From positions 62,001 to 126,000 of the IMG/VR virus record IMGVR_UViG_3300024503_000015: a stretch of DNA of 64,000 bases; one strand, written 5' to 3'. Below, piece by piece: positions 36,159 through 47,554 of the stretch. The stretch's first letter is position 1, and every line of letters starts with the position of its first letter. Below the pieces are notes generated by a model. The model had not been told where the DNA came from, searched no databases, and worked only from the letters and a program-made list of their open reading frames with translations. A program made the translations under genes and the position numbers.

Positions 36159-36581
36159 TTAAACTGCAATCAATACTAATACGTCTGCTGACGAATCGTT
36201 ATCTAAATACCACTTGTACTTGTTACCGCTAAAGTCATAAGCAAGGCGCTTAGTTAATTTAGCAATAGCAGTAGTACCAGGAGTTTGACCAGTTGTAGAA
36301 CCTAAAATACGAATTTCACCATTGGCTGCTGGTGTTCCAGAAACTAGTTTACCAACTTTTAAGTTAGTACCTGTAATAGAACTGATGCTTTCTGCTTCAG
36401 TAAATGCATCATCGGATGTTTTTAAAACAACGTATGTGCTCTTGCCACGTTGTTTAACAATTTGATAGTCACTGGCTAATGAACCGCCGAAGTAACCTTG
36501 AACTAAAATACCTGCTTGTGATGTAGTAAATGAACGAGTAACTTTAGTACCGTATACATCTTTCTTTAATGGACGTCCCAT
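36159..36581 (-). CDS. Hypothetical late protein (MGRPL N-terminus), possibly capsid-associated
   Basis: Own late promoter, strong AAGGAG RBS, directly downstream of the major capsid gene. Confidence 0.6.
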   Translation of the reverse strand: MGRPLKKDVYGTKVTRSFTTSQAGILVQGYFGGSLASDYQIVKQRGKSTYVVLKTSDDAFTEAESISSITGTNLKVGKLVSGTPAANGEIRILGSTTGQTPGTTAIAKLTKRLAYDFSGNKYKWYLDNDSSADVLVLIAV

Positions 36582-45561: not shown

Positions 45562-46428
45562 ATGGAAAATCAAGTAGCAGTACCGCAAAACCCGTTGAAG
45601 AAGTACTTTAGACAACCGAAGCTCTATGTTCGTTTGCCTAGTTCTGGTAATTTTTATCCACCAGGCACGTTAGAACCTACACAAAATATGGAGTTTCCAG
45701 TTTATGCTATGACTGCTAGAGATGAAATTTCTATTAAAACACCAGACGCATTGTTAAATGGTCAAAGTACTGTTGATGTTATTCAAAGTTGTATGCCTAA
45801 TATTAAAAATGCCTGGGCAATTCCTAGTATTGATATTGATGCTATATTAATTGCTATTCGTATTGCAACATATGGCGAACAAATTGATGTAGATATTGCT
45901 ATTCCAAACATATCAGAAACAAAAACGTATACTACTGACCTACGATTAGCGTTAGATAAACTGTTAGATGCTACATTTGATCCAGAAGTTCGAATTAATG
46001 ATGAATTAACTGCATTTTTACGTCCATTATCCTATGAAGAATTTACTAAAAGTTCTTTAAAAAGTTTAGAAGAACAACGAATTTTTACTATTGTTAACAG
46101 TCAAGAACTAACAGAAGAACAAAAGATTGCTCAATTTAATAAGAGTTTTAAAGCATTAACTGAAATTACCATGAGATCAGTGGCCAATGGATTAGTCAAA
46201 GTTGTTACGCCTGAAGGCGAAGTAAGTGATCCAGCATTTATTAAAGAGTTTATCGATAATGCTGACAAAGAATTTTATACTAAAATCATCGATCACTTGG
46301 AAAAACAACGCATTAAGTTTCAAATGCCGTCGTTTAAAATTCAAACTACAGCAGAAGAGCAAGCTCAAGGTGCTCCTGCTGAATTTGAAACTCCTATAGG
46401 ACTAGACGCTTCAAATTTTTTCGCGTAA
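45562..46428 (+). CDS. gp26: Baseplate hub assembly chaperone (T4 gp26-like)
   Basis: NPL..YFRQP...LPS.G.FY, V..MTA.DE, D.DAILIAIR.ATYGE motifs. Confidence 0.75.
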   Translation: MENQVAVPQNPLKKYFRQPKLYVRLPSSGNFYPPGTLEPTQNMEFPVYAMTARDEISIKTPDALLNGQSTVDVIQSCMPNIKNAWAIPSIDIDAILIAIRIATYGEQIDVDIAIPNISETKTYTTDLRLALDKLLDATFDPEVRINDELTAFLRPLSYEEFTKSSLKSLEEQRIFTIVNSQELTEEQKIAQFNKSFKALTEITMRSVANGLVKVVTPEGEVSDPAFIKEFIDNADKEFYTKIIDHLEKQRIKFQMPSFKIQTTAEEQAQGAPAEFETPIGLDASNFFA

Positions 46429-46652
46429 AGCTCTTCAGCCTAACACTCGAAGACGCACTAAGAGTAGTTGAGGGGCTAGATAAAGAAGCAAAGTCCATAA
46501 GAACCGAATTGTTTAAATTGTGCTGGTATATGAGAGGTAGCATCACCATAGATGACGCATTTGCATTATCCTATGAAGATCGTGAAATCATATCGAATAT
46601 TATCAAAGAGAATTTAGAAACTACTAAGAAATCAGGATTACCCTTTTTCTAA
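46419..46652 (+). CDS. -1 frameshift extension of the gp26-like chaperone (gp51-like segment, 77 codons)
   Basis: Slippery heptamer T TTT TTC at 46416-46422 just before the 0-frame stop; -1 frame open to TAA 46650-46652 (FRVKLF...LCWYMRG...KENLETTKKSGLPFF) with no RBS-linked start at its 5' end. Confidence 0.7.
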   Translation, partial: FRVKLFSLTLEDALRVVEGLDKEAKSIRTELFKLCWYMRGSITIDDAFALSYEDREIISNIIKENLETTKKSGLPFF

Positions 46653-46659
46653 TACTTCA

Positions 46660-46745
46660 AGATTCACTGCGTTCATCTGTTCATCGCTTCGCTCGAACTA
46701 TTTGTTTTATTTTAATTATAGAGCATTATTAAGTGCGAAGCACTT
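46660..46745. other. Cluster of ssDNA-type mini-hairpins flanking an AT-rich tract (possible origin/priming site)
   Basis: Minus strand GTTC-GA-GC-GAA-GC-GA-T-GAAC and AGAT-GA-AC-GCA-GT-GA-ATCT; plus strand AAGTGC-GAA-GCACTT; 46699-46720 has one G in 22 nt. Confidence 0.5.
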
Positions 46746-47095
46746 TAGCATTATCCAGATTGTTCAGTCACACTTCGCCCGCACAGGGCAAAGTTAAAAA
46801 CATTATCCGAGTTGCACAATGTCACACAGCGTTAGAGCATTACAGTGGCGGTTGTCCGGTACCACGAGCTCCGTCTTATCACAACGGCGGTAAACAAATA
46901 TACGCTATCATACTTGCTTACGTGAGGTTTTTCTCCTCTCCTTGAGCCTTTTCTTCTTAAAACAGCAAAACCGCGGCAATTTGCGATCCTCGTCCTGTTA
47001 AGGATAGTTGCTGAGTACTCTTAACGGCAAGAGAATTCCGTCCCTGCGACCCGAGGTCCAGGTATAGAGCGCACGAATTTAGCCTGCGCTAGCCA
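46746..47095 (-). ncRNA. Candidate large structured non-coding RNA downstream of GIY-YIG nuclease
   Basis: At least nine hairpins; about 47% GC by hand count over 46741-47100, clearly above the flanking genes; several stems need G-U pairs that work only on the minus strand. Confidence 0.6.
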
Positions 47096-47539
47096 TTAAC
47101 CGTTTGATTTTGCCTGTGCTTGTTCTAATAAACGCTGTCTTAGTATATTTGATCCGCCTACTCTAACATTAATAATACCGTTATAGTAGTCGTCAGTTTC
47201 TAAAACCCTACGTTCGAACTGCTCTCTTGCCTCTAGATAAGACATTTCTGCCTTGGATTTGCAAAAATAAAGTATTTCTCTTGTGAATTTTTCTGGACCT
47301 AGTGCGTGGACGTCTGCTTGTAATCTCTCAGATGAGCCCCAATATTCGCGCCAATCGCTTTCTACTGTGCTACGTCTTTTGAGTTTTTTGCCTTTGAGTG
47401 GTGGTTTTGTACGCTTAAACTGTGCTAGTTTTTTGCCTATATATTTCTGTCCAGATTGGTTGTTAGTGATGAGATAAACAAAGCCTATAACGCCTTCGGG
47501 TATTTCTTCAACTAATACATTTTGATAGTGCCACGACAT
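47096..47539 (-). CDS. GIY-YIG family endonuclease (standalone, short)
   Basis: GFVYLITN...KYIGKK, Y.GSS, F.REIL..C, E...Q and YYN motifs; likely start ATG 47539 (MSWHY). Confidence 0.8.
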   Translation of the reverse strand: MSWHYQNVLVEEIPEGVIGFVYLITNNQSGQKYIGKKLAQFKRTKPPLKGKKLKRRSTVESDWREYWGSSERLQADVHALGPEKFTREILYFCKSKAEMSYLEAREQFERRVLETDDYYNGIINVRVGGSNILRQRLLEQAQAKSNG

Positions 47540-47554
47540 GCACATATATACCAG

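Follow-up and report, generated by a model that had tools for sequence, protein, structure and literature searches.

One Short Word Carried Twice by a Two-Unit Module in a Long Polynucleobacter-1 RNA of T4-Like Phages and Bacterial Islands

A Long Structured RNA in Phage Cassettes and Bacterial Islands

The window, which is the whole 64,000-nucleotide stretch of DNA that we analyzed, is part of a 270-kb T4-like phage record from river water. Its genes include a T4-type portal gene, gp46/gp47-like recombination nucleases, and a baseplate gene. One cassette of the window runs in the order gp47, gp46, a small ORF (75 aa in the window), a GIY-YIG gene, a non-coding RNA, and a convergent baseplate gene. 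This order was kept in essentially every contig that extended far enough, at gp46 identities of 52–100%. Because synteny is near-universal over such a range of gp46 identity, the cassette is a stable part of the genomes in this phage group rather than a homing element of sporadic occurrence. A Seg-type free-standing GIY-YIG homing cassette, recognizable by its sporadic presence and absence, was rejected on the same grounds: the cassette is syntenic after gp46.

The GIY-YIG gene (47096–47545, minus strand) encodes a 149-aa protein that consists of a SegE-type nuclease domain only (Pfam PF19835, E 3.5e-34, profile positions 1–123 of 123). Weak matches link the protein to the NCBIfam group I intron endonuclease family and to the PADLOC homing endonuclease model, and its relatives are found in more than 599 viral contigs. 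Small GIY-YIG genes without the RNA were found at other places in the isolated phages Melnitz (the closest, 62% identity), S-SRM01, and ACP17 and in a Variovorax phage. The connection between RNA and nuclease drawn by the first-pass annotation thus holds for the phage cassette, where the two adjoin, but it is not universal: the bacterial copies described below lack the gene, and the RNA is missing beside the homologs of isolated phages.

The RNA starts one base past the GIY-YIG stop codon and spans ∼440 nt (46660–47095, minus strand; the 3′ limit is approximate). A profile of this non-coding stretch matched ∼141 loci from the stop codon to ∼440 nt downstream, with one copy in the window, and the RNA is conserved end to end. 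At loci where gp46 is only ∼60% identical, the RNA retains 73–80% nucleotide identity. Its 5′ domain (46960–47094, minus strand) is a full-length, high-scoring member of the Rfam family Polynucleobacter-1 (RF01718), matching model positions 1–141 with 119.3 bits against a gathering score of 37, and it shares the family's range of Burkholderiales and fresh water. In the library searched, the motif is named by one paper, that of its discovery, which lists it in a table, gives no function for it, and leaves the downstream module unmentioned (Weinberg et al. 2010, PMC2864571). The match covers the first 135 nt alone. The Rfam model ends at position 141, and the remaining ∼300 nt, comprising a middle domain, a pseudoknot, the module that concerns us here, and terminal hairpins, had no Rfam match.

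Downstream from the Polynucleobacter-1 domain, a 12-bp hairpin (46890–46921, minus strand) carries a loop, AGCGU (46902–46906), that pairs with ACGCU (46828–46832), immediately 5′ of the module's first box. Near-identical RNAs carry AGCGU/ACGCU or AGCAG/CUGCU at these positions, a compensatory switch. At least two mutually incompatible pseudoknot alleles therefore alternate among near-identical RNAs, and they do so independently of the words described below. At the other end, two terminal hairpins (46660–46698, minus strand) with covarying stems are kept in phage and bacterial copies. The first (46679–46698) has a conserved loop, GAGCG-NNA-GCGAA, above a stem that covaries in phage and bacterial RNAs (L295–L307 among them); from its letters, the loop can be interpreted as a short helix with a GNRA cap, flanked by tandem G-A pairs. 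In most homologs, the second has a GNRA cap and a U-run behind it, while it is degenerate in the window. This GNRA hairpin with its U-run is probably the true terminator of the RNA.

The first-pass annotation had proposed a structured RNA here, which the Rfam match and the compensatory changes bear out, and had placed the module at its 3′ end. The module does lie inside the structured RNA, but ∼90 conserved nucleotides still follow it: a hairpin (hairpin 2 below), an A/U-rich stretch, the GA-motif hairpin, and the terminator-like hairpin, down to about position 46660. In the most distant loci, the recognizable remnant of the RNA consists of the module and the terminal hairpins only; these are thus its best-conserved part. 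Folded as a single sequence, the RNA was not significant on its own (z = −1.27), and ARAGORN detected no tRNA-like domain, finding neither a tRNA nor a tmRNA in the window. Coding on the opposite strand (a 70-aa ORF at 46733–46945) was rejected: the boxes fall in different frames and indels in homologs break the ORF.

Metatranscriptome contigs from six runs cover the RNA region; such contigs carry no strand or end information. In three runs, contigs end at 46807 and 46812, in the ACUC and first word letters of unit 1, and at 47096, where the GIY-YIG stop codon meets the RNA start. Strain differences at the word, or processing of the RNA, could account for these ends.

Two further features of the window were recorded in passing. 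On the plus strand, a −1 frame (46398–46652) runs for 84 codons without a stop and overlaps with the end of the 288-aa T4_baseplate ORF (stop codon 46426–46428). The frame has no ATG, GTG, or TTG before 46509, and a slippery heptamer, T_TTT_TTC, lies at 46416–46422; to judge from these signals, it looks like a programmed −1 frameshift that would add ∼75 residues to the baseplate protein. The window also contains a second Rfam match, a freshwater-2 RNA (RF02980; 36579–36650, minus strand; 55 bits, gathering score 49.9), immediately upstream of an ORF that starts near 36581. No complementarity was found between this RNA and the words of the module.

RF01718 is also present in 14 of 121 Polynucleobacter genomes, complete chromosomes among them. 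The bacterial RNAs lie in integrase-bearing chromosomal islands without a GIY-YIG nuclease, in the order divergent DUF6641 gene, RNA, 188-aa tyrosine recombinase, two proteins of no known function, and clamp-loader-like ATPase. DUF6641 adjoins the RNA in 12 of 12 bacterial loci. The recombinase, a catalytic domain only of the Xer/FimB type, is present in nine of the 12; two of the other three loci end too early, and the third has the gene ∼1.3 kb beyond the RNA on a longer stretch. Phage and bacterial neighborhoods have no protein in common besides a generic AAA fold. In three of the chromosomes (G026, G113, and G123; loci L308–L311), the island starts with a full-length integrase and the two proteins annotated without a function are ∼265 aa each; G113 contains two island modules 18 kb apart. 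A PADLOC search of the island module found no defense system. The Polynucleobacter island may be satellite-like or replicative.

Two Tandem Units in the RNA

The repeat noticed by the first-pass annotation is real. The module (46749–46827, minus strand) consists of two units that share one order: the end of a helix, box A (GUGUGAC), a variable spacer, a tetranucleotide (ACUC in unit 1, AUCU in unit 2), a 7-nt word, and a hairpin. This layout, with its repeated boxes and differing spacers, recurs far above chance in 173 distinct homologous modules, and the boxes are conserved across very distant homologs. The module had been called two-fold symmetric. It has no dyad, and the two units are tandem direct repeats related by translational symmetry.

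Unit 1 starts with box A1 (46821–46827), whose sequence GUGUGAC differs among clades around a core GUGA. Spacer S1 (46813–46820; ATTGTGCA as DNA, AUUGUGCA as RNA) has at least 25 forms among homologs. Box B1 (46801–46812) comprises the invariant ACUC (46809–46812), the word GGAUAAU (46802–46808), and a G. Hairpin 1 follows between the units (about 46772–46794) and is the 9-bp hairpin that had been pointed out in the linker: it has nine pairs in the window, one of them U-G. In the alignment, 96% of its cells are paired, and it covaries on the RNA strand, with both-side changes in four of seven pairs. Unit 2 starts with box A2 (GUGUGAC, 46767–46773), which is nearly invariant and reads GUGUAG in bacterial copies. 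Spacer S2 (UGAACA, 46761–46766) has at least 30 forms, and box B2 (46749–46760) comprises the invariant AUCU (46757–46760), the word GGAUAAU again (46750–46756), and a G that is an A in most homologs. Hairpin 2 (46731–46745; tip GC-UUC-GC) is paired in 97.7% of cells and changes on both sides in four of five pairs, which brings the two hairpins together to eight of 12. The bacterial RNAs are long too, and their module reads GUGUAG-UAAAGA-ACUC-word, hairpin, GUGUAG-GUUGA-AUCU-word.

RNAalifold run on the module alignment predicted hairpins 1 and 2 and nothing else. In the consensus fold, each unit is thus a stretch of ∼25 unpaired nucleotides between two helices, with the words unpaired, and the copies of the word lie 47–62 nt apart across modules. 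One natural variant (L018, 3700–3760, on the same contig as L235) has a single unit: the stretch from box A1 to box A2 is deleted, and S2-AUCU-word-hairpin 2 remains. Its sequence looks as if the deletion had been made by recombination between the box A copies.

The hairpins also bear on whether the module acts as RNA at all. Repeats of this kind might be double-stranded DNA iterons of an origin, an operator, or a recombination site, since they are about five helical turns apart, lie near recombination and replication genes, and in the bacterial copies adjoin a tyrosine recombinase. But hairpins 1 and 2 hold U-G pairs that form solely on the minus (RNA) strand, and the module is integral to an RNA with pseudoknot covariation. 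The site also shows no GC-skew inflection, and a DNA-binding protein would have to change its specificity at every switch of the word. We therefore place iterons last among the alternatives, as a far-fetched reading. An R-loop replication origin was rejected for want of a skew signal.

We then considered the spacers. As first cut, they pair at seven of eight positions in the window, as the first-pass annotation had seen. Its boundary for the second spacer has to be moved, however: the units are better cut as x-A-CUC/UCU plus the 7-nt word, and the earlier S2 runs into the 3′ box. In the homolog alignment, the spacer-spacer helix is paired in 65.8% of cells, compared with 96–98% for the hairpins, and is broken in whole clades without compensation. 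A conserved S1:S2 helix was rejected, because four of eight pairs break uncompensated and spacers from the same module pair no more stably than shuffled ones (−0.8 kcal/mol for own pairs versus −0.6 for non-own pairs). Pairing holds in the UGUUCA/UGAACA clade, to which the window belongs, with one compensatory-looking case (UGUGCA with UGUACA); it is absent from clades such as that of UUGCCAG with CAUUAAG. The predicted S1:S2 helix is thus clade-specific.

The layout had also been likened to box C/D sRNAs and TIGR RNAs. On paper, archaeal box C/D sRNAs do show the same sequence of box, spacer, box, and loop, followed by a second box, spacer, and box. But the boxes here are GUGUGAC and ACUC/AUCU-word, with neither RUGAUGA nor CUGA, and the GA pairs that a K-turn needs are not conserved: the GC, GA, and AC word classes (GCAUAAU, GAAUAAU, ACAUGAA) lack the GA at that position of the 3′ box. 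We therefore rejected membership in the box C/D sRNAs. TIGR-Tas (PMC12045711) is similar in that its tandem units are found in phages, have conserved edges around short variable segments, and follow a logic of two segments. TIGR arrays, however, have many near-identical repeats and two different spacers, whereas the RNA here has two units (one in L018) with fixed unit-specific differences and identical words. It has no box C/D-like K-turn, and its neighbors are the GIY-YIG gene, the 75-aa ORF, and the gp46/47-like genes. The earlier statement that the window has no Nop-domain gene extends to the 270-kb record (71% complete), which was negative for PF01798 while controls in four archaea were positive; this result counts against box C/D sRNAs as well. 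With neither a Nop-domain Tas protein nor an array, we rejected membership in TIGR-Tas.

Constant and variable letters are likewise interleaved in the phage-encoded vrRNAs of VIPR, in which, according to the preprint, only the variable letters specify the target and which combine many GGY/NN repeats with a RAMP protein (bioRxiv 10.64898/2026.04.26.720920). The RNA studied here has two units, shows no GGY/NN periodicity, and is not accompanied by a RAMP gene. A T-box (which UGGUACCG resembles), a CsrA GGA sponge, an SD/AUG mimic, and a K-turn were all rejected, either because the letters they need are lost in some word classes or because Rfam returned nothing at E values up to 1.

One Word in Both Units

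The strongest signal escaped the first-pass annotation: the 7-nt word is identical in both units in 169 of the 173 distinct modules; if the boxes varied independently, identity would be expected in 3%. The word itself varies among modules, at least 23 different ones being present. Phage modules carry, for example, GGAUAAU, AGAUAAU, GCAUAAU, GAAUAAU, ACAUGAA, GGAUGAU, or GGAUGAA, and bacterial modules carry words such as AGCGAAA, AUCAAAA, AACAAAA, AGAGAAA, or GGAGAAA. The coupling is thus kept in very distant copies whose words are quite different. Matching word columns share mutual information as high as their full entropy, a level that no third column of the RNA approaches. Several word positions are constant within the phage clade, and the words are short; both points count against the trans reading proposed below. 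A tree built from the 5′ part of the RNA requires at least 26 changes of word state. In independent, well-supported contrasts on this tree, the units changed together in 13 of 13 cases (p = 0.00024); over all branches, there were 23 such cases.

A single pair of loci, L001 and L003, illustrates the coupling. Within the first 350 nt of the RNA, the two are separated by one indel in the inter-unit linker, by the compensated switch of the pseudoknot, by a change from G to A in both words, and by nothing else, while their flanking genes are ∼90% identical. The word changes in both units at once, which implies that something reads it twice.

The coupled stretch has sharp edges. ACUC in unit 1 and AUCU in unit 2 are invariant in all modules, and the base after the word is systematically G in unit 1 and A in unit 2. 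The base that precedes the tetranucleotide, which is the last base of the spacer, is equal in S1 and S2 in 151 of 190 parsed rows. The words are also constrained: in 17 close pairs they differ at 0.1 positions per nucleotide, versus 0.5 for the whole RNA. The same 17 pairs lend no support to the words as arms-race or diversifying hot spots, since they change less than the RNA average.

These edges speak to a mechanism without any common reader, in which concerted evolution at the DNA level homogenizes the words by templated copying while selection keeps CUC and UCU apart. The setting is suitable, with direct repeats ∼52 bp apart in a recombination-proficient T4-like genome, and the L018/L235 variant lost unit 1, apparently via box A recombination. 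Ordinary gene conversion tracts are excluded, however, by the fixed difference of CUC versus UCU before the word and of G versus A after it: the tracts would have to be exactly 7 nt long, bounded by differences fixed in more than 170 lineages. In addition, the words are constrained, and the coupling spans phage and bacterial versions with unrelated words. We consider concerted evolution improbable.

A partner for the word was then sought in cis. Among RNA columns with less than 30% gaps, none covaries with the word. Exact complements of the word between −600 and about +800 are no more frequent than chance and have no fixed place, and the phage inter-unit linkers contain none. A switch in which units 1 and 2 take turns in pairing with a single complement located in the same RNA or mRNA would be a natural source of the coupling, since mutually exclusive pairings yield identity by transitivity, and some bacterial linker inserts are partly complementary to their own word (UUCUCU opposite AGAGAA). 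The absence of a covarying column, of flank complements above chance, and of any complement in the phage linkers nevertheless makes a cis switch improbable too, though we rank it just ahead of concerted evolution.

Coding was considered as well. No protein code accounts for the coupling, because indels break every frame. Word positions 4–6 have a peculiar composition: in 162 phage modules they read UAA (102) or UGA (60) and never UAG, while bacterial words have GAA or AAA there. The words might accordingly be translational signals that join a sense triplet to a stop codon, such as the take-off and landing sites of a bypass or a termination-related signal, and the stop triplet in 162 of 162 phage modules together with a separation of 47–62 nt recalls the bypass in T4 gene 60, whose gap is 50 nt; the triplets also recall a stop context of the RF2 type. 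Yet spacers and linkers vary in length by non-multiples of three, so that no frame is kept; the would-be landing triplet is again followed by a stop; the bacterial words have none; and the structure covaries strongly. A bypass of the gene 60 type, with its matched triplets and UAA/UGA ∼50 nt apart, was rejected for lack of a conserved frame, for the stop after the second copy, and for the bacterial words without a stop; translational signals more broadly are most improbable and rank next to last, above DNA iterons.

The likeliest of the alternatives is a protein. The units could be twin sites for a dimeric or twice-bound RNA-binding protein, with boxes and words as its contacts, an option that the first-pass annotation had put first. 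Repeats are typically read by a single protein in the RNAs of CRISPR, TIGR, and type III antitoxin systems, and the module does present two similar units with their words 47–62 nt apart, an invariant ACUC/AUCU, and a near-invariant box A2. Twin protein sites fail, however, to explain why identity is forced at otherwise free positions across at least 26 changes. No column of the GIY-YIG protein tracks the word (the best mutual information, at high-entropy columns, is 0.44 of 1.45 bits), and although L001 and L003 have different words, their GIY-YIG proteins differ at just two unrelated residues. The phage and bacterial contexts, moreover, offer no shared protein to act as such a reader beyond the generic AAA fold. 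We regard twin protein sites as unlikely, even as the foremost of the alternatives.

A nucleic acid that reads the word fits these results best, because a word switch then needs no change in a protein. Unpaired segments seldom covary by identity, and such covariation is difficult to account for unless both are read by one nucleic acid; that two unpaired, constrained segments are identical points to one reader that sees both.

A Possible Reader of the Words

We tentatively favor, at somewhat short of even confidence, a reading in which the words are twin address words read by a nucleic acid in trans. The two identical words, with the base before the tetranucleotide, would base-pair with this nucleic acid, and the RNA would engage two copies, two half-sites, or two partner molecules that bear the same short sequence. 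The spacers and the CUC/UCU difference would then tell the units apart.

The DNA that we searched did not yield the target. Matches to the units or words did not exceed chance in the flanks, the window, the 270-kb phage record, 2.3 Mb of related phage DNA, or the Polynucleobacter genomes. The earlier suggestion that the spacers are guides fared likewise, as spacer matches elsewhere in the DNA searched stayed at chance. When IMG/VR was searched for protospacers of the window's 19-mer of spacer and box, all 31 matches were the RNA gene itself, which was also the sole match to a common wobble partner (the word complement plus RRR plus U). Within ±10 kb, we found no unit match besides the RNA gene and a few one-mismatch matches to 10-nt arms (nine of ten bases), which look like chance. 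No inverted repeats of the word were found in a host genome.

Several individual candidates were rejected. For a promising 12-mer match in gp46, at its conserved YYLD site, own pairs scored no better than non-own ones (8.29 versus 8.27 of 14), and unit 1 did not fit. Two unit-1-like sites in the bacterial clamp-loader-like AAA gene lie in different registers in homologous DNA and were read as coincidence, and extra exact 12-mers in Polynucleobacter genomes lie in unrelated contexts. In the phage, Polynucleobacter, and IMG/VR DNA searched, no variable segment of the RNA matches a natural target above chance, and we do not assign it to the guide RNAs in general.

The address words might also recruit the neighboring DNA enzymes, the GIY-YIG nuclease in phages and the small tyrosine recombinase in Polynucleobacter islands. 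Recruitment is an attractive extension of the trans-pairing reading because the RNA twice, in unrelated contexts, adjoins a DNA-breaking enzyme reduced to its catalytic domain; we advance it by inference only. GIY-YIG homologs without the RNA exist, and FimB-type small tyrosine invertases work without an RNA, both of which argue against it. A literature search for RNA partners or guide RNAs of GIY-YIG nucleases or tyrosine recombinases found nothing relevant.

The closest functional analogy is with the bridge (seek) RNAs of IS110/IS1111 elements, in which two specificity segments likewise sit in one structured RNA whose gene adjoins that of a DNA-breaking enzyme. In an IS110 bridge RNA, the same short core has to appear in both loops, and reprogramming needs matched changes in the two. 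The identity of the word in both units parallels this rule, by analogy of function only. The differences are substantial: bridge RNAs have internal loops with a left and a right guide, and the units here are unpaired stretches between helices; neither a donor nor a target sequence was found; the cassette is syntenic and not mobile; and neither the window nor the bacterial islands contain an IS110-type DEDD/RuvC-like recombinase.

Carried to its furthest consequence, the analogy would make this RNA a guide of a new type that bears twin words and directs two enzymes stripped down to a catalytic domain, the 149-aa GIY-YIG nuclease of a large clade of T4-like phages and the 188-aa Xer/FimB-like recombinase of the islands. 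The word would be the common core or crossover that both sites carry, and the spacers would distinguish the sites. We consider this full version doubtful, and less probable than a protein that reads the twin sites.

The 3′ module, with its word coupling, seems not to have been described before. It adds a domain to an already known family of orphan RNAs, with a two-segment logic as in bridge and TIGR RNAs. Polynucleobacter-1, an orphan since 2010, is now the head of a much larger RNA, whose best-conserved part includes the pair of units that carry one word twice. In hundreds of contigs, this RNA is a near-universal syntenic component, after gp46, of abundant uncultured T4-like phages, and it is present in bacterial islands as well. 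The identity of the words provides an experimental handle, as one word or both can be altered. If the words are read by DNA and a minimal nuclease or recombinase is recruited, these RNAs would define a new family of programmable RNA-guided enzymes; if not, this is still a widespread phage RNA with a testable function.
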